Positions 15,942-35,302 of a stretch of 64,000 bases of DNA are shown here, in pieces (position 1 is the first letter of the stretch; each line of letters starts with the position of its first letter). The translations under genes were made by a program, and so were the position numbers. Source of the stretch: Mytilus trossulus. Taxonomy: Eukaryota. The stretch lies in contig NC_086378.1 of the NCBI RefSeq assembly GCF_036588685.1, positions 88,164,001 through 88,228,000 of the forward strand, given 5' to 3'. Under the pieces are notes generated by a model. The model was given only the letters and a program-made list of their open reading frames with translations. It had not been told where the DNA came from and did no database searches.

Positions 15942-17960
15942 TTAAAAAGGTTCAAAATCAAGTCTCAAAGCCAACACCCTGAAGGGTAAATCAATATTTC
16001 CAAATACTGATATATTCCCTTTACCAGAAGTATAGAATTTCTTGTTAGTAGGTACATCTATACAGCCTTTCACCTCTTTAATGAACCCTTCCCGACTTCC
16101 ATAAAGGTAAAACAAGTGTCCCATGAGCAAAACATTGCCTCATGTAACTTATTACTTTAGACACTAAACATACAGGTGGTACAAACCAACCATTGGCACC
16201 TTGTCAGTTAATAGTGAATGCATCGATACCAATCGAGTTCACCGTCCAATAACGGGAATAAAATACCGTTAACTTATGATTGTCATCATTTGCAAACCAG
16301 TCTATCTCATGAGGTCCCCATAGGGAATCTACATACATAAATAACTGTTCGTCAATACCCCAATCGTCATAATCAATAATACGACTGATGAAGTCCGCTT
16401 TCTCATTCAAGGTTCTAGGAACCCAAACTACATCGATAGATATATTATGTATCAAACAATTCTCAAAAATGCACATAGTAATATCCTGTAACTCAGGTTT
16501 CATACTACCTTTTTCCACAATAGTTACTACATTCTGGTTATCACTGAAACATTAAATTCGTTTATCTTTTAATACATTGATCATAGATAATAGAATATTT
16601 CTAACAGCATTTAGCTCTTTCCACGTAGAACTCTTTGAAGCCTCACATTCGGACCACATACCATGTGCTATTTTAAAAGGTGTTTCTACAACATAGCCAC
16701 CATATCCTGTATTGCTTGCATCACTATAAACTACAGATTGACATGACACATCTGAAGAAAACTTTTTAACATTTACGTGTTCTAAATTTTCTCTCCAAAA
16801 TTTAATTTGTATCAAGCTTTCTGTTGATAAAACAATACAACTATTCCACGATGTTTAGACATGATATAAGCAACGTTACCAATGACGTATGACATGGACA
16901 CTATTTGTCCCACTAAAGAGGCAACCAATCGTGCATGGACTTTGCCATGTTTAGATACATAATATTCAACGTCAGCAATAGTTTTTAAAACCTTTTGAAC
17001 TCTTTCGTTCGGAATGGTTATAGTGCCACGGTTTGTGTCAATTGAATAACCCAAAAATACCAAAAGTTTCATAGGTGACCATTTAGATTTTTCATTTTTA
17101 GGAACAAATCCACTCTGAATTAAATCTGGTCTCACTTGATTGGACATAGTTTTGCAAGTTTCTTCGTCCGTATGAGTGCCTAAACCATCATCTAGGTACA
17201 TTAAAACTTGTTTACCTTCACCCCTCCACTTTTTTATAAGTGGTCTTGTGATCTTAGTAAATATATAACATGCTGACGAAAGTCCAAAAGGGAGAACCAA
17301 AAACTTATACCATTTTTCGGTGTTTTCATGCCTCCAGGAAAATCCTAAAAATTCTGTATGTGGCATAAAAATATTAACATGGTGATATGCCGACACAATA
17401 TCAAACTGGAAACAAAAAGAATTGTTTGTGATAAACTGCATGGCTATATCGAACATCTTCAAATTTTACACTTGATTTCCAAAGATGTTTGTTAACATGA
17501 CGGAGGTCTAAAATAAGGCGTTTTTTCCTACCGTCCGACGCTGAAACTGTAAGAGGATTTACAACACGAGGTTGAAATTCACATTCCTCAATCAAACCCC
17601 TTATAAGAAGATCATGTATAGCTTCGGTAACAAACTCGCTATGGATGATTGCCGATCGATTGTTTTTTAAGCATATAGAAGGAGGGGTACTGTAAAAAGG
17701 AATTTTGTAACCATTCAAAATAGTATCTAAAATATAATCATAACAACCAATATTTTTCCAAAAAGAATAGTGACTTTGAAGCCTGTCCTTCACAATAATA
17801 TGTGCCTGTCCCTGTTTATACTCGTAGTAATCATTAGTGAGATTATCCGAGTCACTTATCGAAGATACTTTAGTTGTATTATTTTCAATTAAATAATCTA
17901 TGCTACAATTATACTCATCTTTTATAAAGTCTGTACTATTTCGATTTTGGCTGGATAGGT
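15942..17960 (-). pseudogene. DIRS pol: RT-RNase H-methyltransferase, disrupted
   Basis: NPLTVS..GRKKRLILDLRHVN, FDIVSAYHHV, LPFGLSSA, YLDDG, VYSDAS, STWKEL, WVPRTLNEKADFISR, WGPHEIDWFA...GIDAFTIN*QGANGWFVPPV, spread over several broken ORFs. Confidence 0.88.
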
Positions 17961-18688
17961 CTGGGATTGAAGGGACACTGGCTTCTCCAGTGCTGGAACG
18001 ATCCACAACCATAACATGCACCTTGTCTATTTTGTCGTTGAAATCCGCTCGTGCTGGGTTGATTTTGATACAAGGCTTGACCATTGTACCATGACTGGGG
18101 TTCACGAAAGGGCTGATATTTTGTGTGGAAAGTATCAACAAATTGAGAAGGAGTACTAGGAGCAGAATAATTAGCCTTCTTAGAAGCAGACTTTTTTCCT
18201 TTTGCATTACGTTTACGTATCGCCCTACTCTCAGCTTTATTAATTTTGTTCTCATCGTCGGAGTTACTGGCCACTGGATTACTTTCATATTGCCTAACAG
18301 TCTCCCAACCCCCTACACTACTATCGGCAATCTTAACAAGTTTATTTCGTCTTTTAATCTTGTCAATTACTTCAGTAATAGTTTCCCGTGCGTAGTCGGT
18401 CTTTGAATTATCAATGGCCCAAATAGCTTGTGTCAGGTCTTCTGAAAATTCAGTATTTAGTAGAAATTGAACCTTATTTCCCTCATATTTCCAAATATAT
18501 TGAGATTCAGTTTTTAACTTTTTAACCTGGGAAGCAACTGCAACAGTAGACCCGTGAACTTCGTGTCTTAATTCGGAAATGTCTTTCCTAAGTTTTTCGT
18601 TAAAATCACCCTGGGTTTTAACAGCTTTCATAACGTCTCTAAGAGACACCTTCTGTTCTGGGGTTTCCCTCTCTTCAGGGTCCGACAT
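17936..18688 (-). CDS. DIRS gag-like protein with CCHC zinc knuckle
   Basis: 250-aa ORF with a coiled-coil N-terminus, KIADSSVGGWETVRQY and CYGCGSFQHWRSQC; overlaps the start of pol. Confidence 0.85.
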   Translation of the reverse strand: MSDPEERETPEQKVSLRDVMKAVKTQGDFNEKLRKDISELRHEVHGSTVAVASQVKKLKTESQYIWKYEGNKVQFLLNTEFSEDLTQAIWAIDNSKTDYARETITEVIDKIKRRNKLVKIADSSVGGWETVRQYESNPVASNSDDENKINKAESRAIRKRNAKGKKSASKKANYSAPSTPSQFVDTFHTKYQPFREPQSWYNGQALYQNQPSTSGFQRQNRQGACYGCGSFQHWRSQCPFNPRPIQPKSK

Positions 18689-19247
18689 TACAAAAAATTT
18701 ACCAACTTACTTAAGAATTAAACTTTAGATAAATGTGTGTTGACGGTTCGGCGCTGTCGTGCTGAATGACCAAAACCCCCGTTTTGGCGGGAAAAATGAC
18801 CGTGCGATAAGCACGACACCTACATACATCATGAACAAACAAGAGAAAATAATTTCACTCTTATTCACTACGTTCAAACGAAAGAAATTATATATATATT
18901 TAATTGATATGACATGCACATTACAAATAAAAAAAAAACAAAAAAAAACCAAACACATGCATGTGCTCTGCAAATAAATCAAAACATTCATATACGAGTA
19001 GTATAGAGTTTACAATATTTAGTTTTCAATACAAGTCACAACAATCGATGTATATATGTAATGCATATGTAATGTATACGTATACATTGTATCTCATTGG
19101 CAATCGTACCAATAAATTATTTATTGTTTTCTAACTACAAAACTGAGATAATGTCAATTCTTTTCTGGAAGAATTATCAAAAGCAAGTATACATCGTGAT
19201 ATGTTTTTAGTTATTTGTTTTGTTGGTGCTGACCGGTGTTGAAGTAT

Positions 19248-22200
19248 TCAGTTGTCACTCATTTTTCGGCCGGATGAACGTCTTCTTCTATGCTGTAATT
19301 GATTTTGCTGAACCTCAAGTTGATGTCCAAACTTCTCAGTTTTGGTCACGACTTCAGATCTGCGACGATTCATCTTTACTCCGTTGTCTGAATGTCTGAA
19401 AGAAAACAAAAGATCAATATAAGTTGGTCTTATTCGTTTGATCTTGACCAGTTGGCACATACTCAAAAATCCCTTGTGAAAATAAACCTGAATCAGCAGG
19501 AGGATAGTTCCCATATCTTGTTGGACATTTGATATATTGCCTTTCCTCGTTTATGACTATCATCTTGCTGAATTCGTAAAAATACTTTCCGAATGTTGGT
19601 TCCCCAATGCTCTTAGCTTCATTCTATATTTTTAACTCTGATTTGAGCATCACTAATGAGTCTTTTTAAGAAGAAACGCGCTTCTGGTATATACAATTAC
19701 AAGCCTGCTAAATCTTTGAGTTTTTTAAACTATACTTCAACTTGGAGTCATGAGTGAGCACGATATCTCTATATTAATTATTAAATACCGCACATCACTC
19801 TATTTTAGATGAATGTTTGAATCTTCTAGTGGATCAGGAACTGCTCCAAGTGAGTTCACGTGTAACAAGAGGGTTTGGGTTTCTCAGTAATATGTTTCGG
19901 TATAATGTGTATTGCGGACTGTTCGCTCTTCGTCACATTTTGGTGGACATTTTTCAGATGTATAATTTTAAATGCCTCGTCTAAGAATTAGTTCACAGTC
20001 GTATTGAGTCTTCCATTCGTTTATTTAATTCAGTCTTTCCCTCCTTTTGAGCAGTTCGTTTTAAGCATATTACTTTTATGATGAGATTAAACGTGTATAA
20101 TGAATGCGTAATGTTAAAATGCAGAAAAACAAAGGTGAATGGAGGTAGCAATGTATAGTGTCTCATTATGACGAAAGTTGGCAGGGACTCAAATGCAATA
20201 AATGCTCCAACAGGAAACGTAATTCTGGTCTGTGTAATTACCCAATGACTCCATCCGAAAAATGAACCACTTTGCATACAAAGACCGGGCTGAAATAGAT
20301 ATGGTTTGGTTGCAGTAAAGGGTTTTTATTAAATAAATTGATCACACCTTTGAAAAACAGATGTGTAGATATTATGATATCTAATGAATAATTTGTGTAT
20401 TAAGTACCTCAATTCAATATCATATTACACTGTCATAAATTTAGGATTAAGTGTTCAGTGACACTTATTTAAAATACATTGTAATTCATCAGTGGTCAAA
20501 ACGCGTAAGTATACATTGCTTTTTCCATTTGAATTTTGTTTTTCTGCATTGTGACATTGAGGGTTGTTTGTCAAATTTTAATTAAGGTAAGTACCAATGT
20601 GAATGGAATTTGTCTTTAAAAGAAAAAAAATAGTCTCTAAAAATATTAAACGATGATTTGATGAGGGTGGCCATGAAGGCACACATGGACTGTCGCTTTA
20701 AGAAAAGGGATTGTGAAGTGGATTATAAACGAATTCATACTCAAGAACAACAAGTGTACTAAGTTTTAAGTTGATTGGACTTCAGCTTCATCAAAAACTA
20801 CCTTGACTAAAAACTTTAACCTGAAGTGGGGCGAACGGACGCACAGAAGAACGAACGGGCGGACAGATGGACGAACGAAAGAACGAACGAACGAACGGAC
20901 GAACGGAGGCACAGACCAGAAAAGATAATGCCCCTCTACCATCATAGGAGGGGCATAAACATAAAATAACTTAAAAAACGATTAAGGGAACATTGACTCA
21001 ATAAGATATATATAAAGTAAGAATGTTAAATAAAGAAGATGAATAAAAAGGGTTAAGCAATATGTGAGTTTACGATAGAATGTCAAGTGAAAAGCAAAGC
21101 AATGTGCGAGTAAGTTGAAAATCAAAAGCTCAAACATATCAACTGTCATATTCCTGACTTGTTACAGACACTTTTTGATGTATAAAATGAGTGATTAAAC
21201 CTGGTTTTACAGCAAGCTAAACCTATCACATGCATGAAAGTCTCATTACATTCCATTATATTGAAAACAAAGTGTGAGCAAAGCAAACAGATATAAAGGG
21301 TAAAAATATCAAGAATATGGAGAACATCATTTTTCTTTTGATAATGATATAAACTTAATCACTATAAAAACACAAAAATATGACAACAACGAATTAAAAA
21401 ACATATAGAAAAAAGCACACAAGCAAAACCGAAAGACAAAAAGACAAAATTTACCTTACCACAATAACGCAATGACTGGATGTGAATGTACCGAGCAACA
21501 TCAAATGGATATTACAGAAACAAAAGACTAAACAGTAAAATTAATAATTCAAAAACACCAATAAATGAATACTACAACACGTAATTGAGAAGATAAACAA
21601 CGTCAGTACCCATAATCCATACTTCAAGACAATTGTGCATTATTTCTGAAGTTGAAGTATCAATAAGGTCTTGGTATCTTCCGATGAACTTTTATTTTTA
21701 GAAAGAGGAGGAGATGTTCTTTGTTATAACCCTGGTACATCAAATTTTTACTCAGACACTACTTGATGACGCTTTATAATAGATATAGGAAGATGTGGTG
21801 TGAGTGCCAATGATACAACTCTCCATCCAAATAACAATTTAAAAAGTAAACCTGAGTTTCTGAGTAGCAGCTACAAGCTATTGAATACTGAATTAGTTGG
21901 CGTGTTCAGATTGATTTTAGGTAGCCGAAAACAATTGTTAGAATTTTGCCTTTAAAAGCTTAAACACTAATAGTGTAAAAATAAATGAATCATAACTCCC
22001 TCGCTTTATTTCATTCTGTTTTGAAGTTTCCCTGGAGTTCGGTAATTTTGTACTTTTTTCCCAAACTATCTGATATTCTTTTAACTTTTGATTATGAAGA
22101 TCTAAACATGTACCAGGAAAATCTTGTATAGAAATAGAATACGATATTAAGATATTTTTTTTTTATAGAAATATATTCCCCCCCCAAAAAAAAAAGATAC

Positions 22201-25200
22201 AGCCAACTAATCTATACTAACACTACATACCTACCCGGAGGATGGATGGTCTAGTCGTGAATGGTTTCTTTCACTGTGTTCAAATACATTAGATGTCCTT
22301 GTGTAATCCTCGCTGTAATCTACAGACACGGATGCGTCAGGGTCACGCGGTTTCATCTTCACGCATAGAACTTTCCTTACTTGATTGTTAGTAAGAACAT
22401 GACAGAAGAAAAGTAGCATTCCCTGTAAGGAAGATTCATAAGAAAAATAAAAATTACCGCCATATTAATAAATTTCAGAAGACAACACAGTACAATTTCA
22501 ATCAAAACTTTGTGAGAATTTCTATATAAAACATTTCGTCGAAATTATTAAATTCATTTCAATTGTTTCTCCAAATCTGCGAATAAAAGTGCTAGTTATA
22601 AATATTCTAAAGCAATCTATAATAAAGGTGACATAGACTTCAAAACCATCTAACAGGATGGAACTATAGATACATATAGTTGAAATGTTTCTTAAATGAA
22701 GGATCATTTTTATAAATCTATCTAGAAGTCATCTTATATAAAGATATGTCAGACATGAAATATATTCCTACCTGTGTTGATGCCAGGAATACGAATACAT
22801 AGGCCATGACCTTAGGAGAACCAAAGGTCACGATGAAACCAAGAGTCCATGTTAGTCCTAAAACACTCAACAACGACACTCCAGTTAAACACTGCTGCCT
22901 ATGAATAATATACACACTCATTATCTCCAAAAGATACACATGTACAAAAAGAGGGACGAAAGATACCAAAGGGACAGTCAAACTCATAAATCTCTTTATA
23001 TCAGTATATTAGTGTAATCAATAATATATTAAAATATACAATTCATTGATATAATTGATTCAGAGATTTTTGTTTAAAATATACGCAACTTAAGTTGTTA
23101 GCTAGTAACATTAACACTATTTAATTTAGATTTTCACTTTTCTGACTATTCGTTAAGGGAATCATTACACAGATCTTTACAACCCATTCAATTCTTCTTT
23201 TGTTTTGCATATAAGAAATATGTGATAAACAAAACCACAATCCTTAATTAAATTCTATTGATAGACACTGTCTTTAACGCAGCTATAGCATCAATAATTC
23301 CAATAAAGTTATCCTCCTTTTAAAAAATATGCATACGCCACCATGATTTAGTTGACTATTATAGAACATCAGTGTTACATGCAGATGTCAACATATATGT
23401 TCTACTTGTAAAGTTACCAAATCCCATCTATTTTCGCCGAATGTGACATTTCAAAATGTAATGTATCACCGAATTTGTACCTGCTGAGCAATATTGTTGA
23501 TAGTAGTTAGTTATCAAAGGTACCAGGATTATGATTTAGTATGCCATACCCGCTTTTAGTCTACACAATACTCATTAGTGACGCTCATATCAAAATAGTT
23601 ATGAAGCCAAATAAGTACAAAGTTGAAGCGAAGTTGAACAGTTCCACAATTTACCCAGGTTTTTAATGAGGTTCATTTATTGTGCGCAATATTTTGTTTT
23701 GGTTGTTTGCGTTTTCGTCGTGTTTATGCCATTGAATTGATTAATAGACTGATTGGTGTTAAATGCCACTTTCAACACTCTTATATCAGGTCTATAAACA
23801 GGAAATCTCTGTTTAACAAAAAACAGCTAGGACATATTAATCTCAGGTCTATAAATAGTAAAATCACAGAAAAACTCCGAAGAAAATTCAAAACGGAAAT
23901 TCCCTAATCAAATGGCAAAATTAAAAGCTCAATCATGTCAAACGAATGGACATCAACTGTCATATTCATAACTTGGTACAGCCATTTTCTTATGTAAAAA
24001 ATATTGGATTGAACCTGGTTTTTATTATATGGACATAGATGCATGAACAAAACAAGACATACTAGGCAAAAATGTCCAAACTACAGCAGCCAACATTATG
24101 TTTTAATCTTAATCACTGACAAAACAAAACGAATATGTAACAAAGAAGCACAAAATGGCATATAGACCGAGCACGGAATATCTGAACTATGTATAAGAAA
24201 TAGCTTTGGCATATTTATCTCAACTTCACCAGCGGAAATAAACCTTACTATATAAGAAACGAAGCGCATTTGTTATGAATGTTAAATAGATATTTCACTC
24301 ATACTCACTTTATTATATTAGGGAGACTTTCTCCCCGTTTAATGTCAAGTGAGAAACGTGTAGCCATCATTAGCAGAAAAACACACCAATTGATCTAAAT
24401 GTAAAAAGAAGAATTACAATTAAATAGTTGAATAAGTTATGTAGAATACATTGTATATTAATCTGAGATCTTTTTTTTTACGTTAAAGAGTCTATACAAA
24501 AATACTAGTGGCAAAAAAGAAATGCTTTTTAGTTAACTTTATTGAATTCACAAGCACCTATGACGAAATTTTCAGTACATACAGAGCATTATATTTTACA
24601 TTTTATTCATAATCTAAAATATTTTGTCAAAATTAAAATGTTGTCATCTACGTTTAAAGTTTTACTTTTCATTTTACTTTTAAAATGTTTAACCCAGCTA
24701 TTCACATTGGCCTGACCCAGTCATAAAGGGGTTCCAACCATTTGCCCACATTCTAACATAAAAAGGAGCGTTCCTACCCCCGGAACCAACACCCCTGGAT
24801 CCCCCACTGGGACACTAACATTTACATCATTTATATACCATAGTTTTTTAACGTCCGTTATTGTCAACGTATGATTGAATTAGTGAATAGATTCCAAAAG
24901 CTTAGAATGTAATTGACTGGTTACTCCATATATTAATATTCTACTACTTCTCTGCCAATCAAGCAAATTTACTAAGGATTTAGAGGAGACTTGCCGGTTA
25001 TGCCCCTAAATAGGATTCGATGCCTCTCTTGAATATAACATGCAAGTGTTTTGAACGAAAAAGGCCTCATAAATTGTACTGATGTACGGAGGAACTCGAA
25101 AGTGGTCTATTGTCAGTACAGTTCTGGCATGATTCATAACATGTTCTTTCCAGTAAATTCTCTGTTGGTAAATTGTTGAATTATTTAACAAACTTAAGTT

Positions 25201-28200
25201 CCATCTCCCTCAGTAAATGACGACCTAAGACGAGTTGGGCATTATTTAGGTTTCTTTTTAGTAATAATACTCCTCACGTTTACAGGTCTCATACATCCTA
25301 GTCTTTCAAATTTTGAAGGTTGGATCATTCCCAGTGGAGGTGAATCCACTTAATTTTTTAGTTTTTCATATTATTTGTGTGTTGTGTAAATGACCTGTGT
25401 AATTCTATGTAATTGTGACTGTATATATTTTGTTTTATAATAAAAGATTTAGTACTTACAATTTGTATCATCATCACCGGACCAAGAAAAGCCCATCTGG
25501 TTCCGTGCTCCGTAGGTAACCAGCATCTACAAACAACCGAAACATACTGTTAAATATAAAACTTATCTATAATTTATAGAATTAAAACAAATGATAACCC
25601 GGAAGAACTGTATTATGATTAACTTAAATCAAGGTGTAAGTTAAAGGATAACTGAACATCTGAAGTACACTAAAAAATTTAAAATGTTACCTTTTTTCTA
25701 ATCATCACTTGATTCAAAGCAAAAGTCCGGGTACTTTTGATAATACACCGGTTGTCGAGGTTATTCACAGGCCCAGCCTATTTGGACAAACATATCCGAA
25801 TTAATTCACACCATGTGATAGTTTATTAGCCAATAGATTAATGCAATTATACTATGAAGTATAAACAAAAATTAACTTACAAAGAACCTTTTCCAAAGTC
25901 TCCTCCTCGCAGCGAGACTGTCAATAAAGATATTATTAATGGCGCTCCCCAGCACATAAAAACAATCACTGGGCGTTTCTTCTTGATATCTCCAAAATTT
26001 TTCAACTGAAAACAATAATTTGTAAGTATATGAATGTAGGTTGAAAACAAACTTTTTACTTGTTTTTTTATATAGATTAGACCGTTGGTTTTTCCGTTTG
26101 AATGGTTTTACACTAGTAATTTTTGGGCTCTTTATAACTTGCTGTTCGGTGTGAGCCAAGGCTCCGTGTTTAAGGCCGTACATTGACCTATAATAATTTA
26201 CTTTTATAAATTGTTCTTTGGATGGAGAGTTGTCTCATTGGCACTCACACCACATCTTCCTATATCTATATGATTACAAAACTCCAATGTTTCAGTGTTA
26301 TCTGTCATTGGATAAATCAGCAATATGTTGGAAATAGAAGTAGTAGCTTGGTTTTGAATGTTATGCTGATATTATTTCTAATGATTAGCTTTGCTTGTTT
26401 TAAAAGTTTCGATCTATCTATCATCGTTTTCAAGGTAAAGTACTCAAAACTGCCAATAGTAAAAATCGTGATTACGAGTAAATAATTGATATACTGACGA
26501 TTCGGCAGTGGTGAATTATTTGAATATATTATTTTATTGTATAGCAATATAATATTTCCCACAGAACGTAACCAAAAATTAGCATGCAATAAATTATAAT
26601 ATTGCCCTAGTGCAATAAATCTTCAAAATTCATGACGTCATCAACGTTAAAATCTTAGTTTAAACCAATTTTTGCTTTCAAATAGCATTTTGCTATACAA
26701 TAAAAGGGTTATTGCATGAATATTGGGGAATATTGTCCCTCGTAGAACATATATTGCACTCACAAGCTCGTGCAATATAAAATTCTACTCGGGACAATAT
26801 TCCCCAATATTCATGCAATAACCCTATATTATTGATACGTTTAGCTCTTCACTTCAAAATCTATGCATTTTCATATAGATAAAACCGTTGGTTTTCCCGT
26901 TTGAATGGTTTTACAATAAGTATGTTTGGGGGCCTTTATAGCTTGCTGTTCGGTGTAAGACAAGGCTTTGTGTTGAAGGCCGGTCCTTGACCTAAAATGG
27001 TTTACTTTTAGAAATTGTTACTTGGATGGAGCGTTGTCTCATTGGCACTCATGTCACATCTTCATATATCTATTGTTTATCTATTTTCATGGAAGTTTAT
27101 AATTGTATTACCTTAGAGCATAGATGAATCCCATATGAGAAAGAACAGAAGTGGACAACAAGAAACAAATACTGTATAACAACTGTGGCGGATGTACACA
27201 TCCCCTAAAAATAGAAAATATAAAATGTCAATTTGATAAATCATATATAAGCAAACTAAAGCAACAACACAAAACGCTTATCTAGTAAACGGGAGCCAGC
27301 TGAAGCCCGCCTCTGCGTAATATTCTCGTTATGTTGAAAACATATCGGTGGGTTTCTGCTGTTTTCTGCTCTTTGGTTTGATTGTTGTCTCTTTTACACA
27401 TCCGAATTGCCATTCTCAATTTTAATAACACTTTGCTTTAAATCATATATTTTTTTATAAACCTAACTTTTATTGTAAAATATATTGCAATCGAATAACA
27501 TTTATAAAACTCAGATTTCAATATTAACGTTACAAAATATGAGAAAGACAGACATTTACATATTTTGTTAACATTTTACCTTTTCGGGATATGCATTTTC
27601 TGCTGCTATGAACGCCAGTTGTGATGTCACCAAACTGATGCAAAGATTTGTTAATATGAACGTGCTGTCATTTCCTACACTACAATTATAAACACAGATT
27701 ATCAAGGCCTCAATTTGACTTTAAGATTGTAAACAGCAATAAAAACATTGCTACTGCTAATGCATACAACAGTTATCAAAGGTACATATAAAAGGTTGAT
27801 GTCTAAAATTATTTCTCAACATGCTTTTCGTTGTCATCATATTTGCGATAAGATAACTTAACCCAAATATTTTTCGCAAGCATTACGAGTAGAAAAATAA
27901 CGTGAATATAAAAAGCCGAGTTTGTGTTGCCCAGTCTATAAGTTTGTTTGTGTTTTTTTGTACTGCTGTTTGTGTTTTGCACAAACTGGTCGTTTCTTGA
28001 AAGAAATATCATCAACGTGAGACTCAGAAAATCGTGATAATAAATCGTTGCAGACTAGAAAGTAAAAAATGATTAAAACTACCCGGATTATAAGTTGGTA
28101 TACAGCAAAAATATCTGTTTTTTCTAGTGTTTTACTTTGACCATTTGATGCATTATGTTTATGTCTCACTTAGAATTGATTTTCAAAGTTTTTTCGTAGG

Positions 28201-29125
28201 AAACATACTTTGGAAAACATTTACTACTTATGAAATCGAATGTGTTTGGAAACTGAATTATTATTATATTTTTATGTCTTTTGACAATAAGAGTTTTTTG
28301 TCACGAAAACAACTGTTATCATTTCTCTTCCTAATGTTTCATAGTTTTAGTTTTCAACGTCTGTTTTCCGTGGAAGTACTGGATATTTTGTACCCATTCA
28401 AGAATGATTATGTAATCAACTTGTAATTCATAACTTTAAGCATGCAACCTGGAGTAACACTTTGAATGAACTTCAATTGAATTTGAATTTCTAACTACTT
28501 ACGGAAGAAAGCATATCAAGCATAACGACAGCATAGTACCAACGAATGAAAATCCACACCCGGTTACTGTTAACTTTATTAGATTAGCATTGTCACCATC
28601 AGTCACCTAGATGGATTACAAACATTTAATTACTTTGTTTTTTGATAATAATGGAAATACAATACTTTTACTGACAAAAATGCTTCAAAAATAATTTTGG
28701 CTAAGTCTTTGACTGAACATAGATCAGATTTACAAGAAAGATACGTTATTTGTACAAACACAATTATATTGATAGAAACTAGTCGGTGCATATTCACCCT
28801 GTGGATTTTTTGTTATACTTTTCTGTTATTATTTAGATATAGGAAGATGTGGTGTGAGTGCCAATGAGACAACGCTCCATCCAAATAACAATTTCAAAAA
28901 AAAAGTAAATCATTATAGGTCAATGTATACAAATTATTTTACACATTTTTACACATTTTTAGGTATAATAAAGTGAGTGAAATGTTATATGCAATAAAAG
29001 GCAAAAGCAAAGTCTGGAAACAGGCAGAGATTATTCTCAGTCGGAGTTATTTAAAACAAACTTGAATTGAATTATATACTCACTGTTTTATTCCCCAGTT
29101 CCATCAAAAATAAGTAGTTTGCCAT
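19248..29125 (-). CDS. Adhesion-class (family B2) 7TM GPCR lacking an N-terminal ectodomain, about 375 aa
   Basis: Exons 29125-29084, 28606-28503, 27679-27580, 27204-27112, 26005-25881, 25526-25460, 24394-24309, 22898-22772, 22422-22235, 20289-20242, 19395-19248 sum to 1128 nt in frame. Motifs LTVTGCGFS (TM1), NLCISL (TM2), C..ATVVIQYLFL (TM3), CWGAP (TM4), CWL (ECL2), WAFLGP (TM5), LLSVLGLTWTLG (TM6), YVFVFLASTQGMLLFFCH (TM7). The last three exons are less certain. Confidence 0.85.
19645..19690 (+). repeat. Degenerate hammerhead-retrozyme fragment
   Basis: GAGCATCACTAATGAGTCTTTTTAAGAAGAAACGCGCTTCTGG is homologous to 38330-38373 with a mutated core. A similar degenerate copy lies at about 23510-23640 on the minus strand. 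Confidence 0.55.
20755..20960 (-). mobile_element. HINE-like element, inverted partial copy of 12853-13195
   Basis: (GAAC/GGAC)n microsatellite, ATGCCCCTC...GAGGGGCAT palindrome and the core unit. Confidence 0.6.
26706..26824. repeat. Near-perfect 119-bp palindrome within a MITE-like insert in a GPCR intron
   Basis: 33-bp exact inverted arms GGGTTATTGCATGAATATTGGGGAATATTGTCC, with further inner pairing (GTAGAA/TTCTAC, TATATTGCAC/GTGCAATATA). Confidence 0.9.
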
Positions 29126-30957
29126 CTTTGCTAATGAAAAGAGAAAAATGTCATTTGAAATTTTGAATAAACAGAAAATCATATTCAATAATGGAAAGAA
29201 GATAAACATCAAACTTTAAACTTGCTAAGAAACAGAAAACACAAAGAAAGAGAAAATATTTAAAAAAGAAAGGAATACAAAACCATTTAAGGTACACAAT
29301 CGACATTAAGTCTAAATAAAACAGACATCACCGTGGCCAATAGAAAAACGACAAGAAGACAAACAACGATAACAAAACACTTCACAGAAAAACAATGCTT
29401 GAGCAACACGAACCCCAACAAAAACCAGCGTCAACTCAGGTGCTCCAGAATGGTAAACCATTACTTTATCATATTTAACTCCCAAATGTTATATACTTAT
29501 ATTTTGATTCATCTTTTTTGGCATGCTATTTGTTTTCGAATTAAATGAAAGAGAAACATAATAGTAAATAAGTCCGCTAATAATATAAAAGCTCAATGTT
29601 TCTAAAAAATACAATAAACGAGTAAATGAATAAAAACTGATAAAACTTTTTTTATGTCGCAATATGAAAAAATCCACATACCTTCTTTTACTTCTCCTGT
29701 TCGTTTTAGATGCAAATACGAACTGCCATCCAGGAAAACATGAGTATGATGGAAAAGAAGTAAAACGCATTATTTTTTATCCTATTACTTGGGTGCGGAA
29801 AATTCTCTATTAAATCGTATTATTTCTAAGTAATTACCAACAGATATGTATTAAATCGTAAAGAAATTTTAATTAATATTTGACATGCGAGGTATCTATT
29901 GCAAAAGAAGCTCAGTATGACTTTTTGATTGTGTACTGCCGTAGTACGTTGATCTGGTGTTGTTTTCTTCCTTGTCCAATTTTCAAATCGTGGAATTTTG
30001 TTTTCATTGCAGTCATATCAAAGCTTCTTACTTTCCTACTATATTTCAAAGATAACAACATGGATTCTTATTTGAACAGCCTGCAGAGCAAAATGAAAAT
30101 CCTCTTAGATAGTTTTGCTCTATGAAGGAAGTCTCTATGGTTAAAAAAAAGCTTTTAGGAAGCGATGTATTCATGATATGCACCTACCAGCTTAAATCGA
30201 AGCACATAATCTATAGTGAAGAAAAGAGAGAAAAAAAATTTAGAATGGTTCACCCATCCTTTCATTATGTAAACTTAAAAAAAGTTAATATAGGCATACA
30301 TCTCTTTTAATCTTAACCCTTGTCGTGCGGGGGCCGTAATATTACGGCTGTACCCAGAATACCGTTATTTTGGCATCAATGGCGCTCCATACATGTAGAG
30401 GTCATCGTAATACCATTTAATTCGTAGTGATCCGTAGTGTATGCACGTTTCCTCAATCTGAAACTATTCATGTCATGTTTCTCACTTTAAATATTCAGTT
30501 TGAGCTTAAATACGAACTTCAAAATTTGATATCGGACAAAATTGTTTTTTTTTTTTAGGGGTGGGCTTACCTTCAAGGTCTTAATCACGGCATAGAGTTC
30601 AGAGGACTGAAACCTTGACAAATACCGTTAACATAAAGGCAAATAACGACTGGTCGTGTTTATTATCAAAATACGCCGAGGAAACGACTACTTCCGGTTG
30701 CAAGTCCAGTTAAAGTTCAAAATTGGAAAAATCCCGAATTTTGTGAATTTTGGTGCAAATGACCTTCTTTACACTGATAAACCCAGATCAGTTTCACTCC
30801 GACCTAACAACTGTTCTGATAAAAGTGTTCACTGGTGTCCATTCTACATGTAAACTACAGATGGATGCATCTTTTAGCATCTCTCGGACTTACAGGTCGA
30901 GAAAAAGAACGAAAAAACGTCAAAATTGACGCTTTTTGTACCTGAGGACCAACTTTG

Positions 30958-32430
30958 ATTGCCAATGAGACAACTATCCACAAAAGACCAAAACGACACA
31001 AACATTAACATTTATAGGTCACCGTACGGCCTTCAACAATGAGCAAAGCCCATACCGCATAGTCAGCTATAAAAGGCCCCGATAAGACAATGTAAAAAAA
31101 TTCAAACGAGAAAACTAAGGCCTTATTTATGTAAAAAAAATGAACGAAAAACAAATATGTAACACATAAACAAACGACAACCACTGAATTACAGACTCCT
31201 GACTTGGGACAGGCACATACATAAATAATGTGGCGGGGTTAAACATGTTAGCGGAATCCCAACCCTCCCCCTAACCTGGGACAGTGGTATAACAGTACAA
31301 CATAAGAACGAACTATAAAAATCAGTTGAAAAAGGCTTAACTCATTAGATAGACAAAAAATACAAGTGGACGTGGCCGGGTACTTATACACCCCGACACA
31401 AAAAGACACAATGAGCAGATCTGAGAGTACTCGCAGTTATCTAACAGCTAGTTCAAAGCCACTAACAACTAATAAAAAAAGTCATGCCTCTAAGACTACA
31501 AACTCAATCCGTACACATCCAACATACAATGGATTTAGTGTAAAGACGTCATAAACAGCCGGAGAAAAACATGACCTTGTACAATGCCAAGTAACAGGTA
31601 TCGACAGATTGTAGATCCATGAAAATGTATATGTATATAACATACTAGTAATATTTAGTTAGCTTTTAATCTACTAACAACAAAATCAATATTTTTACCA
31701 ATAAAAACAATATTTAATGATCTTATTACAGTGTTGAATAGGTAACCTTTTAGAATACGTTTAATTAAAGAAGCAACAAGTTTACATTGATAATTTCTAA
31801 ATTTCCGGGCACGGTTAACAACATTTCCGTAAAAATGAGGATGTGCTATCCCGTTTGAAATAAGTTTTCTACAGGTACAACCAAACTTCAAAACCAAATC
31901 TTTATATCTATGGATAAATTTAGTAAAGGTTTTAAGTAATTTATGGTAACGATATTCCTGGTTTAATAATTTACCAGTAATACATAGGTTGCGTTCGTTA
32001 AAATCAAAAACGTCACAACAGACACGGCCATAGCGAACAAGTTGTGAAATACAAACACCGTAAGATGGAACATGACCATCTAAAAATGGAAAATTAACAA
32101 TAGGGAACGAAAAATCGTCTCTTTTCTCGTAAATTTTAGTGTGTAGTTTCCCTTTAAAACCGAAATATCTAAATCCAGGAAAGGACAGTTATTACTGAAT
32201 ACATTTGATTTATTTAAAGTATAAGTTCCTTGAGACAAATTTCAGCAGTATGTTGAGAAAATTCTTGATTATTTAACGAAAAATATCATCAAGATAACGG
32301 TAAGTGTTGTTGAATTTATCAATTAAATGCAATTTTGACGGGTCTTTACTGAGTTTAGTCATAAACTGTGATTCGTAACAGTACAAAAACAAGTCTGCTA
32401 TTAAAGGGGCACACTTAGTGCCCATGGGGG
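30958..32430 (-). mobile_element. Penelope-like retroelement (Naiad-type): RT core and thumb plus 3' tail, 5'-truncated and frameshifted
   Basis: PMGTKCAPLIADLFLYCYE, RYLDDI, PFLDLDI, YEKRDDFSFPIVNFPFL, YGVCISQLVRY...KLLNQ. The ORF ends without a C-terminal GIY-YIG domain and is followed by a SECIS-like hairpin. Confidence 0.85.
31494..31560 (-). promoter_or_regulatory. SECIS-like element (type II)
   Basis: Minus strand: helix I GGCUG/UAGUC; core AUGAC...UGAG; helix II GUCUUUACAC/GUGUACGGAU; AAA; mini-stem UCCA/UGGA. Confidence 0.72.
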
Positions 32431-33544
32431 AGTCCATTTATAGCTGCATATCAGTTATGAGTTGTGCTCAGTTGGAAGAATAAAGGCAACAGTAGTATAC
32501 GGCTGTTCAAAACTCGTAAATCTAGGGACAAAAAAGAAAATCGGGGTATACAAACTGAAACTGAGGGAAACGCATCAAATATAAGAGGAGAACAACGACA
32601 CAACATTAAAATGTAGCACACATAGAAACGGACTAAGCATTAGACAAAATCCGATGAGAATAAGAAATATAACATCAAAACTAAATACACGAATTTGGAA
32701 GGCCGAACGGCGACCGATAGATGATAATTTCCCTGTCATTTTTGTCTCTTATAAAGAGTTGTCTCGTTGAAAATTATACCCCATCTTCTTATTTTATGTA
32801 TAATATCTGAGCGATGAACCAAATATCTTTATTGTTTGTGACGATATGGTGACCTCTTACTATATGCCTTTAACATATATGGTTACTGGGACATTTCACC
32901 AAACACTACATCATCTCCCCCTCCCCATAGTTTCCCCGACGATTAACAGTTGTGGGAGGTTTTATTATACGTATTCGTATAGTATATCATGTTTAACCTT
33001 TTCCGTTATCTACTCTTTTTCTTTGAAACGTAATGCAATTTGTAAATATCCCTGATTAATTTAAATACGGATAATTGACTCGTGTTGTGTACATAGAGTA
33101 TTGATTCCTGATAGATCAGACTGAAAGTTAATTTATGATGTTAAATCTTTTGAGGGTTTCATTGATCAATATGTATTATATAGCTTTTAATAATTTTGAA
33201 AGGTATTACTTATGTGACATGTGTCAATATCTTGTTAGACCAGTATTTTATAAATGTGCTTTTCCTGGGTTTAATAACATGTTTTGTTATCGCTTAGGTT
33301 CAGTTTTTCATTGGTAAAAATTTATTAATGTCATCAAATTTTCGCGAAAAAGTCTAAATTAAATAAATAACAAAGCATGAGCTCAATCTATCCAAGGCTA
33401 TGTAATGGTTATCTTTCTGATAATGTTTTACATCTCACCTCCTTTTAAAAAAAATAGCTGATTCATAGATCAAATTTATTCATTCACTGTATGTTCACTA
33501 GTTACACTATTGTTTCAGGTAAGAAGGAAGTTTGGCGCCTATTA

Positions 33545-33950
33545 AATAAAGGCAACAATAGTATACCGATGTTCAAAACTCATAAAACCATGGACAAAAA
33601 ACAAAATCGGGGTTACAAACTAAAACCGAGGGAAACGCATTAAATATAAGAGGAGAACAAAGACATAACACTAAAATGTAACACACAAAGAAACGGACCG
33701 AGCATCAGACAAATTCCCACGAGATATAACAAATATAACATCAAAACCAAATACATCAATTTGGGATAGACAAGTACCGTGACACGTCTTATCGCAATGT
33801 GAATTTACACATTAAAAAAAAAAGAGAAAACAAACGACACAACTTTAAAATGTAATACACACAGAAACGAACAATAATATAGCAATGGTCATATTCCTGA
33901 CTGGGTACAGGGCATTTTTAAAGCAAAAAATGGTGGGTTGAACCTGGTTT
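33545..33950 (-). repeat. Interspersed repeat family (copies at about 3614-3910, 32483-32700, 35575-35625, 63388-63600)
   Basis: Shared terminus ATAAAGGCAACAGTAGTATACCGCTGTTC and collinear downstream sequence. Confidence 0.7.
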
Positions 33951-35302
33951 TAAAACGTTTAAACCAGTTGCATATGGTTGCAGATGTCGTTTCTCAGGAA
34001 CCTGATGTTCAATGGTTGTCGTTTGTTGATTTGATTCATAAGTGTTTTTGAGATAAATAGCTCAGTTGTTTTTTCTGTTTGTATGATTTTACACTAGTCA
34101 TTTTTGGGCCCGTTAGGCCCGTAATAGCTTGCTGTTCGGAGTGAGCAATGACTCCGTGGTGAATTTGTTCTTACTTTTGCAATTGTGACTGGGATGTAGA
34201 GTTATCTCATTGGCACTCATACCACATCTTTTGATACCTATTTGCTCTATAATAAATACATTCATTTCGTGTATATTTTTGTCTGGACGTCAGATAGTTC
34301 AGCATCAAGATTACCTTCGATAGTCATATAAGCCGATTAAATCAAAAATATAAATAGATAGCGACCACGTGTAATTGGAATTTATTTTCTAGGTCTGCTT
34401 GATTCATGAATTATTTGTAAAAAGTTTATAATTATAGGTCAAACTTTAACTTTTCAACACGCAACCTTGGCTCCTACCGAACAGCAAAAATTCAAACGGC
34501 AAAATCAAAAGCTCAAACACATAAAACGAATGGACAACAAATGTCATATTCCTGAAATGAACAGTGCCAACCCTAAACAAGATTACGTTAATAAAACATC
34601 AATCACAGGTAAATTTGAATATTTTAATTTTGTAGTTGGAAGCACGAAATTAAACATGTTTTACAAAATTGATAAATTTGTTGTTCATAGTACGAGTAAA
34701 GTGGTGAAAATTTATCGTCATACTAATTTATAAAATACATATCAAAGGTGGTACATTAAAAATAGTGAGACGAGAAATAACACAAAACAAATACAGATTG
34801 AGTTACAGTAATGCAATAAAAATTGTATCAACTGGTCAAATTAACATGAAAGTACAATTTAAGAGTACTCATTGTTTCTTAAAAATTAAAAAAAAAAAAT
34901 AACAACAAAAAATCATGAATCAGAGAAAAAAATCTAACCTTATGATAAATGTGTATTATATACAGATAAAGCAATCTCTAAAAGGAAAATAAACGGGGAT
35001 GTGTCCTTATACAGTGTACATCCCTAAAATCATTCGAAAAGAATGCAAATTCAATTATGTTTTCAATTTGTCGATGACATAATAGATGTGTATACCCATG
35101 CAAACGATACTCAAAGATCTTATTTCAACAATTTAATTCATTTCAATTCAAATTGAAGTGATGATATAGCATTTAAAAAATCTCCAAATCAGTCTAAAAA
35201 GAACATATGTTTAAGACAGTTACTCAATTTTCATACGTTAAAATGATTTTTTTTCAAACAAAAGATCAATCTGTTAACTATTAATTGGTATTCCTCAATT
35301 AA

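Follow-up and report, generated by a model that had tools for sequence, protein, structure and literature searches.

The window analysed, a 64,000-nucleotide stretch of Mytilus trossulus DNA, carries on its minus strand a ten-exon gene that opens at CAAAG-ATG-G (29130-29122) and spans 29125-19248 (Table 1). All ten coding exons match RefSeq XP_063442810.1 (Mytilus trossulus, 359 aa) at 100%, a protein labelled 'adhesion G-protein coupled receptor D1-like'. The start proposed by an earlier sequence-only reading, ATG 29125-29123 with A at -3 and G at +4, agrees exactly with this record, and the stop codon finishes at 19248, as that reading had claimed. On the minus strand, exon 1 and its surroundings read ...ttttctcttttcattag/CAAAG ATG GCA AAC TAC TTA TTT TTG ATG GAA CTG GGG AAT AAA ACA/gtgagt, which gives the peptide M-ANYLFLM-ELGNKT; the donor follows 29084, and the next exon, from 28606, reads VTDGDNANLIKLTVTGCGFSF.... 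Read-through of the exon-9 donor leads to a TAG stop; the resulting 311-aa isoform is part of the M. edulis and M. galloprovincialis annotations. Exon-wise searches of the genome found no paralogue closer than E 2e-5, leaving none for comparison of exon structure. The locus is an intact, transcribed, single-copy gene.

Table 1. Features of the receptor gene and its 5' region, in the direction of transcription.
Feature	Position	Strand	Evidence and remarks
TATA-like TTTAAATA	29257..29264	-	~35-40 nt upstream of the expected RNA contig end (~29221, contig-length arithmetic)
Transcribed 5' leader	29126..29218	-	Sequence and frames; RNA contig covers at least to 29202
Polypyrimidine tract + AG, 5 nt before ATG	29131..29148	-	Resembles a 3' splice site; RNA contig reads through
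Coding exon 1, M1-T14 (MANYLFLMELGNKT)	29084..29125	-	ATG 29125-29123, context gcaaagATGg; RefSeq 100%; donor seen in RNA joints
Stachel-like heptapeptide A2-N-Y-L-F-L-M8 = P1'-P7' (T-N-F-A-V-L-M) of cleaved adhesion GPCRs	29102..29122	-	phmmer, MAFFT, orthologues
N-x-S/T sequon N12-K13-T14 in stalk	29084..29092	-	N12 and S/T14 invariant in all orthologues
Intron 1, GT..AG	28607..29083	-	RNA joint 28602->29080 (cut +4), CT..AC ends on + strand, runs X2 and X3
Exon 2, stalk end + TM1 (VTDGDNANLIKLTVTGCGFSFVGTMLSLCLICFLP)	28503..28606	-	RefSeq match; exon-2 donor use shown by an RNA contig piece whose start is exactly 28503
Exon 3, TM2	27580..27679	-	RefSeq match; weak 7tm_2 match
Exon 4, TM3	27112..27204	-	RefSeq match
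Exon 5, TM4	25881..26005	-	RefSeq match
Exon 6, ECL2 C-W motif + TM5 start	25460..25526	-	RefSeq match; C156, W157 invariant in alignment
Exon 7, TM5 + ICL3	24309..24394	-	RefSeq match
Exon 8, TM6 with L-G-L-T-W + TM7 start	22772..22898	-	RefSeq match; W223 nearly invariant
Exon 9, TM7 (Q-G-M-L-L-F-F) + proximal tail	22235..22422	-	RefSeq match
Exon 10, distal tail + TGA stop (19250-19248)	19248..19395	-	RefSeq match

The product is a secretin/adhesion-type 7TM protein. Exons of the window were searched singly and never joined; full-length steps used the database proteins P0026, which equals the exons, and P0003. Pfam recognised 7tm_2 (PF00002) alone in the Mytilus protein (1.5e-22). In a phmmer search of the PDB with the scallop orthologue, the nearest solved relatives were ADGRL3 (1.6e-29) and ADGRD1 (4e-28), and the top matches were adhesion GPCRs (aGPCRs) throughout, with class B1 receptors behind; the 7tm_2 domain is thus closest to adhesion-type receptors, as befits class B2, at an identity of the bivalve proteins to ADGRD1/ADGRL3 of only ~25%. 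The W and E of TM3 that are typical of adhesion GPCRs are absent from the bivalve family in both phmmer and MAFFT alignments, so coupling of these receptors may be atypical.

RNA evidence comes from three small runs containing the locus, and consists of the intron-1 joint and one near-full-length contig. Spliced RNA contigs support intron 1 and the exon-2 donor, with no upstream coding exon attached; the sequence-only reading had named an untranscribed gene as an objection to itself, and the gene is transcribed. One contig (X3 record 17) follows the genome without a break over 29080-29202, crossing the AG at 29131, and in that one transcript the polypyrimidine-AG before the ATG is unused as an acceptor. 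The same reading had considered a 5' exon (donor 29681) spliced onto 29130, but the long contig continues past the AG to at least 29202. That exon has no read support, and the X3 contig ending at 29638 has a loose end unlike exon 1. Within the leader, an in-frame TAA (29218-29216) is followed by in-frame ATGs at 29209-29207 and 29182-29180, with no stop between them and M1. These ATGs would yield a leader of 19-28 aa, and the one at 29182-29180, which has A at its -3, puts MIFCLFKISNDIFLFSLAK ahead of M1. A uORF of 7 codons, in a different frame, runs from the ATG at 29154 to TAG 29133-29131. The TATA-like TTTAAATA is a candidate core promoter.

We compared the N-terminus with the Stachel of cleaved adhesion GPCRs (arrows mark cleavage sites). 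M1-A2-N3-Y4-L5-F6-L7-M8 aligns, gapless to TM1, with ADGRD1 L↓T-N-F-A-I-L-M. The position-for-position match noticed by eye was recovered by two independent aligners: phmmer placed Y4-M-F-L-M-E of the scallop orthologue on F-A-I-L-M-Q of ADGRD1 (8x9s_R), with no gaps through TM1, and MAFFT placed M1 under L and A2 under T/S of the vertebrate GPS C-x-C-x-H-L↓T/S-x-F-A-V-L. The Stachel core (Y4-L5-F6-L7-M8 against F-A-I-L-M of ADGRD1) therefore lies at its fixed distance from TM1, with a stalk of the same length as in ADGRD1 and an N-tail of ~25 residues. The core consensus is F/Y, A/G, V/I, L, M/L/A, in which L contacts W45.51 and the TM6 Trp; in canonical Stachels P2' is a variable hydrophilic site and P4' a normally conserved A/G (PMC13470171). 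In the bivalve family, the positions that depart from consensus are P4' (L/M/T/A) and P5' (F). Both Trp partners of the Stachel Leu are present: the MAFFT alignment shows no variation at C156 or W157 and almost none at W223, and phmmer aligns C156-W157 and W223 with C-W and L-G-L-T-W of ADGRL3. The autoproteolytic triad H-L↓T/S/C is absent, since the aligned residues are M and A, which leaves no P1' nucleophile. No residue occupies the catalytic-His position because the protein begins at the P1 Met; the codon preceding the ATG would give K. Self-cleavage of the Mytilus receptor is neither possible nor needed. The sequon in the stalk would fit an extracellular N-terminus.

Searches for an upstream GAIN/GPS gave the absence that the sequence-only reading had reported. 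Whole-genome Pfam scans gave no match to GPS (PF01825) or GAIN (PF16489) within the window, and Pfam found neither domain in any orthologue tested. The patterns C-x-C-x-H and W..GC...C-x-C are absent from the three minus-strand frames of 29131-64000 (regex), tblastn of three GPS-bearing ectodomains against the whole window returned noise alone, and the 16 ORFs in the 29492-35124 gap gave no relevant Pfam match. Because the Pfam GAIN model is weak on single exons, where even true loci fall below cut-off, most of the weight of this negative is carried by the GPS scan and regex, together with the RNA contig and orthologue models. The gap upstream of the gene is filled with high-copy sequence, plus a weak RVT_1 fragment.

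The receptor belongs to a GAIN-less adhesion-type 7TM family found across bivalves. We compared gene models (RefSeq or other) from 16 species in 10 bivalve genera (four Mytilus, four scallops, seven oysters and Mercenaria); every model begins M-A-x-Y-x-F-L-M, the form in which the proposed conserved start, Met-x-N-F/Y-x-x-L-M, holds in these genera, and all are 300-375 aa with 7tm_2 alone. A2, Y4, F6, L7 and M8 are invariant in bivalves and a limpet (10 mollusc genera), and the variable Stachel positions are P2' and P4'. In Crassostrea, transcript contigs (1.3-1.6 kb) contain this protein as a 353-aa ORF that opens with M-A-S-Y. Two RefSeq isoforms of Ostrea edulis (X1, X3) carry a 17-aa leader, M-I-F-L-F-S-F..., before M-A-S-Y, and the Lottia model has V at position 1 instead of M and a 38-aa extension, with M-I-F-S-N-F... 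upstream. The GAIN domain was apparently lost before the sampled bivalve lineages split.

An AF2 model of the Mytilus protein, built from 18 input sequences, had a mean pLDDT of 70.7 (an earlier 8-sequence run gave pLDDT 50 and was not usable). It superposed on 7EPT, a Stachel-bound, active structure, with Z 30.8 and an rmsd of 2.7 A over 263 residues, and its fold matched aGPCR structures at Z 26-31 versus ~25 for class B1. Against structures containing a tethered agonist the superposition starts at model residues 2-4, whereas against most of the listed small-molecule-agonist or ligand-free structures (8x9u, 9iv1, 8x9t, 7xkd, 7yp7) it starts at 19-25. The structure prediction called for by the sequence-only reading agrees with Stachel-bound active structures over the fold, but residues 1-10 have a mean pLDDT of 49, so a pocket-bound pose of the N-terminal peptide is only suggested; its register in the model is off by 0-2 residues relative to solved Stachels.

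Taken together, we favour, at a probability of about 0.55, a conserved, GAIN-less, CTF-only adhesion GPCR encoded as such by the whole locus, the natural equivalent of laboratory Met-CTF constructs and probably self-activated. An ancestor would have lost its entire extracellular region, GAIN/GPS included, and retained the final strand of GAIN, which is the Stachel or tethered agonist, with Leu at P1 of the former cleavage site becoming today's initiator Met. Methionine aminopeptidase (MetAP) would take off Met1 ahead of Ala2, TM1 would act as a reverse signal anchor that moves the 25-residue N-tail outward, the conserved N-x-T sequon would be glycosylated outside, and the free A-N-Y-L-F-L-M may fold into the pocket of the 7TM, the arrangement that cryo-EM shows for cleaved receptors. 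In that case the protein would be on from synthesis, and controlled by the amount made or by another binder rather than by NTF shedding. N-terminal Ala is a usual N-acetylation substrate, and acetylation of Ala2 would be a counterpoint to the free-agonist reading. We infer constitutive activity of the Mytilus receptor solely from its analogy to engineered constructs of the Met-CTF type, among which ADGRL3 made as Met+CTF signals constitutively; MetAP is thought to remove the Met more readily where P1' is small (PMC11849108).

Exon 1 might instead be an internal exon of a longer, classical receptor, in which exons for three TSP1 domains and a C-type lectin, on the same strand 6-13 kb upstream (42317-35306), and undetected GAIN exons are spliced in phase 1 onto 29130. 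The position of those exons and the canonical polypyrimidine-AG 5 nt ahead of the ATG are what such a gene would show; yet the lectin exon runs into a TAA (35305-35303), the 35 kb upstream hold no GPS/GAIN by Pfam, regex or tblastn, the RNA contig continues across the AG, and the models of 16 bivalve species are short and hold 7tm_2 only. No long ectodomain with adhesion modules was found, the TSP1/lectin exons being unjoined in the RNA contig and in all gene models, and we regard this structure as extremely improbable. The sequence-only reading had also raised capping in trans, which here would mean that a secreted product of the TSP1/lectin neighbour silences the receptor by binding to the exposed peptide, until it is pulled away. 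Mouse aGPCR genes with separately transcribed NTF and CTF parts are known (PMC6667449), and the locus itself offers only the tandem same-strand arrangement; the neighbour likewise lacks GAIN, or any GAIN-like sequence able to hold the strand, and the claim is unsupported and very unlikely. That the heptapeptide is a GAIN leftover and no longer an agonist, the receptor being driven by an external ligand, a partner protein or nothing, is a reading we consider unlikely. Human ADGRA1, itself GAIN-less, still signals when its short N-terminus is missing (PMC12324398), BAI3 signalling is reported to be possible independently of tethered agonist and GAIN domain (PMC13322242), and the TM3 motifs of the bivalve family are atypical. 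However, five of seven Stachel positions are still invariant across bivalves and a limpet though no GAIN is left as a constraint, the Stachel Leu keeps both Trp partners, and the stalk length to TM1 is unchanged.

A start further upstream is possible, if doubtful: Mytilus and some other molluscs might initiate at an in-frame ATG (29182 or 29209), placing a hydrophobic leader of 19-28 residues before K-M-A-N-Y. Retained, this leader would cap or weaken the agonist; alternatively, signal peptidase might remove it (e.g. after S-L-A), replacing GAIN autoproteolysis. The RNA contig, colinear to at least 29202, includes ATG 29182, whose context and stop-free frame to M1 would permit its use, and Ostrea isoforms X1 and X3 begin 17 residues ahead of M-A-S-Y, as the Lottia model, lacking the P1 Met, also has its M-I-F-S-N-F... 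upstream. Against this, the four Mytilus RefSeq models and models in seven further bivalve genera begin M-A-x-Y, as does the ORF of the Crassostrea transcript contigs, and among the ATGs it is the main one that lies in the best context. Being short and broken by charged residues, the leaders make poor signal peptides, and their similarity among Mytilus, Ostrea and Lottia is borderline against composition-preserving shuffles (p ~0.05-0.06 per pair); T-rich DNA by itself gives F/L/S/I-rich peptides. Both starts could also serve one exon, giving two proteoforms, an uncapped Met-Stachel receptor on from birth and a capped one from the upstream M-I-F... ATG, a combination that we hold to be quite unlikely. 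Its 17-19 residue leader would either mask the agonist or need removal by signal peptidase, and the choice of transcription start, AG 29131 or start codon would set receptor activity. If true, translational or 5'-end control would stand in place of GAIN-mediated mechanical control of the tethered agonist.

In the current view, the GAIN domain holds adhesion GPCRs off, and freeing of the Stachel turns them on. If the locus encodes a CTF-only receptor, as we favour, the bivalve family is a natural experiment on how far the Stachel is conserved as GAIN strand or as agonist: P1', P3', P5', P6', P7' and the two Trp partners are kept without a GAIN, a sign that selection acts solely on the interaction of the peptide with the 7TM. 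The share of Stachel conservation due to its GAIN beta-strand role versus its agonist role is an open question (PMC13470171). CTF-only aGPCR isoforms and transcripts and the GAIN-less ADGRA1 are already known, and the idea is only partly new. The gene models likewise pre-exist in RefSeq; the present contribution is an interpretation of their N-terminus, and practical value is otherwise modest.

ADGRD1 (GPR133) and ADGRL3 (latrophilin-3) are the closest solved relatives in sequence and fold. Both differ from the bivalve family in carrying a large ectodomain, with GAIN/GPS and a site for cleavage at H-L↓T; the bivalve proteins also lack the TM3 W...E-G motif. ADGRA1 (GPR123), the sole GAIN-less human adhesion GPCR, is also a stand-alone GAIN-less class B2 7TM gene, but its 22-residue N-terminus is non-Stachel-like and dispensable for basal G-protein activation (PMC12324398), whereas the bivalve family retains the full Stachel core. 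Mammalian aGPCR genes can likewise produce a receptor half without NTF or autoproteolysis, through CTF-only transcripts driven by internal promoters (Knierim et al. 2019, PMC6667449); PMC13197933 cites the ADGRB1 intron-17 promoter as a further source. Such transcripts yield isoforms alongside the full receptor from the same gene, and their starts do not lie at P1 (the start of the tested ADGRD1-6 ORF falls 7 residues into the Stachel, and basal activity was not raised; PMC6667449), whereas the mussel locus encodes the CTF only and starts exactly at P1. The same design is found in the engineered Met-CTF constructs used for signalling assays and cryo-EM (e.g. ADGRL3-CTF, ADGRG1/GPR56 7TM, ADGRD1 CTF), which share with the mussel protein an initiator Met, a Stachel from P1', a ~20-residue stalk and the 7TM, and on whose structures the AF2 model superposes at Z 26-31. 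These constructs are constitutively active, with Met thought to be removed by MetAP (PMC11849108). The mussel gene differs in being natural and conserved across bivalves, with activity that would follow by analogy, and in having Ala at P1' (not Thr/Ser), Tyr at P3' (not Phe) and Phe at P5' (not Val/Ile); with Ala at P1', the protein can do without a nucleophile and should lose its Met efficiently. The family would be a natural counterpart to the Met-CTF constructs that underlie most of the tethered-agonist model, and its 340-360 aa proteins offer a clonable handle on whether cells tolerate and use a receptor active from synthesis.

The minus strand from 29148 to 29078 reads as a pyrimidine tract, AG, CAAAG, the codons ATG GCA AAC TAC TTA TTT TTG ATG GAA CTG GGG AAT AAA ACA, and gtgagt, so the sequence-only reading was right about the N-terminal peptide, its coordinates and the strong context of its start codon (A at -3, G at +4). 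Other 7TM pieces lie downstream of this exon in stop-to-stop ORFs on the same strand. We searched the last large exon against protein representatives and recovered one protein from Mytilus coruscus and one, 342 aa long, from a scallop. Cluster look-ups and word searches yielded RefSeq models from four Mytilus species, including M. trossulus XP_063442810.1 (359 aa), which is 100% identical to ten exons of the window (see table). This match identifies the gene rebuilt from raw sequence as the RefSeq "adhesion G-protein coupled receptor D1-like". A genome search found no close paralogue in the mussel.

Minus-strand exons of the receptor gene and of its upstream neighbour, in window positions
Feature	Position	Strand	Basis
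Receptor exon 1	29125-29084	minus	XP_063442810.1 mapping
Receptor exon 2	28606-28503	minus	XP_063442810.1 mapping
Receptor exon 3	27679-27580	minus	XP_063442810.1 mapping
Receptor exon 4	27204-27112	minus	XP_063442810.1 mapping
Receptor exon 5	26005-25881	minus	XP_063442810.1 mapping
Receptor exon 6	25526-25460	minus	XP_063442810.1 mapping
Receptor exon 7	24394-24309	minus	XP_063442810.1 mapping
Receptor exon 8	22898-22772	minus	XP_063442810.1 mapping
Receptor exon 9	22422-22235	minus	XP_063442810.1 mapping
Receptor exon 10	19395-19251, stop to 19248	minus	XP_063442810.1 mapping
Thrombospondin type-1 exon	42317-42099	minus	Pfam
Thrombospondin type-1 exon	37618-37352	minus	Pfam
Thrombospondin type-1 exon	37004-36798	minus	Pfam
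C-type lectin domain, two exons	36350-36123, 35554-35306	minus	Pfam; TAA 35305-35303

The exon 9 donor overlaps a TAG (22233-22236); the 311-aa isoforms annotated in M. edulis and M. galloprovincialis result from reading through this donor, the 359-aa form from splicing. M. galloprovincialis X1 (375 aa) carries an additional 16-residue insert ahead of the last exon. Just downstream of exon 10, on the minus strand at 15945-18706, is a run of long ORFs (256, 303, 217, 100 and 115 aa), the first with a C-x2-C-x4-H-x4-C zinc-knuckle motif; they apparently belong to a retrotransposon. A large tandem array at 52853-57380 shows up on the minus strand as dozens of 49-aa ORFs, almost identical to one another.

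The N-terminus is conserved among bivalves. Proteins of the four Mytilus species begin M-A-N-Y-L-F-L-M-E, those of Pecten, Mizuhopecten, Argopecten and Ylistrum M-A-N-Y-M-F-L-M-E, those of Crassostrea gigas/angulata, C. virginica, Saccostrea echinata/cucullata and Ostrea edulis (isoform X2) M-A-S-Y-T-F-L-M-D, and that of Mercenaria M-A-F-Y-A-F-L-M-Q; models from Pinctada and Tegillarca and one from M. coruscus are partial or mispredicted at this end. In Crassostrea, transcript contigs (1.3-1.6 kb) carry the same 353-aa protein, again starting at M-A-S-Y. Numbered from the ATG in exon 1, A2, Y4, F6, L7, M8, N12 and S/T14 are invariant across ten genera, position 9 is limited to E, D or Q, and positions 3, 5, 10, 11 and 13 vary. 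Between orthologue isoforms the C-terminus varies, as does the presence of a single Gln where exons 1 and 2 meet, which indicates that the intron position is common to them. The listed bivalve models thus begin M-A-x-Y-x-F-L-M, a positive outcome for the proposed check on a conserved Met-x-N-[FY]-x-x-L-M start in orthologues, and in these aligned sequences a conserved Met immediately precedes a full Stachel-like core (the Stachel being the tethered agonist peptide of adhesion GPCRs).

We looked for the GAIN domain and GPS motif, where adhesion GPCRs autocleave, in several ways. A Pfam scan of the whole genome placed GPS at 60 sites, most with model positions ~11-45 in one exon, and none of the 60 is inside the window; a GAIN scan, which is weak on single exons, gave no window match. 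The patterns C-x-C-x-H-[LMIVF] and W-x(2-5)-G-C...C-x-C are absent from all minus-strand frames of 29131-64000, and tblastn of three GPS-bearing ectodomains against the window returned only noise. No domain of relevance turned up in sixteen ORFs of the 29.5-35.1 kb gap; one of them weakly matches a reverse transcriptase, and several stretches of this region occur at very high copy number in the runs. In all orthologues 7tm_2 is the sole Pfam domain. The earlier failure to find a GAIN/GPS exon upstream therefore held under profile scans, motif patterns, tblastn and gap ORFs, and the gene encodes a GAIN-less 7TM protein.

The thrombospondin type-1 and lectin exons lie directly upstream on the same strand, and the lectin exon ends in a TAA. 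They probably form a separate secreted-protein gene, an arrangement that recalls the "split gene" idea for N- and C-terminal fragments (NTF/CTF) of Knierim et al. 2019 (PMC6667449). Between the two genes, a minus-strand retroelement remnant at 31658-32437 comprises two ORFs, one of 54 aa that weakly matches RVT_1 and, directly downstream of it, one of 177 aa, and is flanked by high-copy segments at 30880-31279, 32480-32679, 33480-33879 and 34080-34279.

Sequence words from the locus are present in only three small public runs, which we aligned over 28480-34479. Contigs of two RNA runs (X2 and X3) join across 28607-29083. The piece removed is bounded by GT and AG when read on the minus strand and is exactly intron 1; the receptor gene is transcribed and spliced. 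Intron 1 also holds, at 28806-28928, a ~100-nt element found at 87-98% identity at dozens of sites spread over many chromosomes and very deep in the RNA/DNA runs, probably a MITE/SINE-like repeat. One X3 contig (record 17, 1246 nt) is most simply a fully spliced mRNA, since its exon-2 piece starts exactly at the exon-2 donor and the 1004 letters before that piece match in length exons 3-10 (934 nt) plus ~70 nt. At its other end the contig stays colinear with the genome over 29084-29202, with 19 letters left unaligned, so the AG at 29131 did not serve as a splice acceptor for this transcript. The candidate 5' exon proposed earlier (donor 29681, spliced to 29130) thus finds no support in the RNA contigs, and no upstream exon, coding or non-coding, is joined to exon 1 in record 17. 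The sequence TTTAAATA at 29264-29257 lies ~35-40 nt upstream of ~29221, the contig end if colinearity continues; it is a candidate promoter only, as the contig cannot fix the true start site.

This transcribed leader raises the chief alternative to a product that is strictly "born-cleaved", namely that Mytilus makes a real leader-bearing protein. Downstream of an in-frame TAA (29218-29216) are two ATGs in frame with M1, at 29209 in poor context and at 29182 with A at -3, and no stop separates them from M1. A 7-codon uORF begins at the out-of-frame ATG at 29154 and ends at 29131. A start at 29182 would prepend M-I-F-C-L-F-K-I-S-N-D-I-F-L-F-S-L-A-K. In Ostrea edulis RefSeq isoforms X1 and X3, M-I-F-L-F-S-F-E-S-S-I-L-T-K-S-T-K precedes M-A-S-Y, and an old JGI Lottia model has ...M-I-F-S-N-F-L-L-S-S-I-W... 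upstream and V, not M, before A-N-Y-M-F-L-M. An M-I-F start is common to the in-frame leaders of mussel (29126-29218, minus), flat oyster and limpet. However, local alignments of the leaders against composition-preserving shuffles are borderline (p ~0.05-0.06 per pair), and T-rich DNA alone also yields such peptides.

In a MAFFT alignment with three GPS-bearing vertebrate receptors, M1 falls at the Leu of H-L and A2 at T/S. Against PDB sequences (phmmer), the top-ranked matches of the scallop protein were ADGRL3 (1.6e-29) and ADGRD1 (4e-28), with Y4-M-F-L-M-E on ADGRD1 F-A-I-L-M-Q, gapless to TM1. The Stachel consensus is a hydrophilic P2', then F/Y, A/G, V/I, L and M/L/A, and its Leu is clasped between ECL2 W45.51 and a TM6 Trp (PMC13470171). 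The bivalve family has N/S/F at P2', Y at P3', L at P6' and M at P7', and departs from this consensus at P4' and P5'. Conservation in the family extends to the C-W of ECL2 and to the W in L-G-L-x-W; as judged from the alignments, the 7TM has kept the partner residues of the Stachel.

An AlphaFold2 model (18 sequences; mean pLDDT 70.7) superposes on the tethered-agonist-bound structures 7EPT (Z 30.8), 7WU2 (29.8), CD97 (29.7) and ADGRF1 (29.5) from model residues 2-4, whereas superpositions on most of the listed small-molecule-agonist or ligand-free structures start only at residues 19-25. This difference lends weak support to the suggested insertion of the peptide into the 7TM pocket: the model puts it roughly at the Stachel site, but with low confidence (pLDDT only 49 for residues 1-10) and in a register that differs by 0-2 residues between target structures.

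Methionine aminopeptidase removes Met before Ala, and the mature protein would then start A-N-Y-L-F-L-M. Most GPCRs do without a signal peptide when inserting a short N-tail; here the tail would be translocated and glycosylated at N12, and the peptide would fill the pocket, with the receptor signalling from synthesis on. As no GAIN constrains the peptide any longer, its invariance points to selection on the contact between peptide and 7TM. Sequence alignments show that the whole bivalve family has lost W and E of TM3, a warning that coupling may be unusual. ADGRL3 and other Met+CTF constructs are constitutively active (PMC11849108).

CTF-only transcripts from internal promoters are frequent in mouse adhesion GPCR genes; the one tested, ADGRD1-6, begins 7 residues into the Stachel and did not raise basal activity (PMC6667449). 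In ADGRB1, an intron-17 promoter gives CTF-like isoforms (PMC13197933). A literature search of limited scope brought up no account of a gene family that stands alone and begins at P1 with a complete Stachel. The human gene ADGRA1 likewise lacks a GAIN, but the N-terminus it encodes is unlike a Stachel and is dispensable for basal activity (PMC12324398), in contrast to the full Stachel-like core of the bivalve family. Set against the hallmarks of adhesion GPCRs, the bivalve proteins lack the GAIN and have the 7TM and the Stachel, and we file them, by sequence, as a GAIN-less derivative of the class rather than a classical member.
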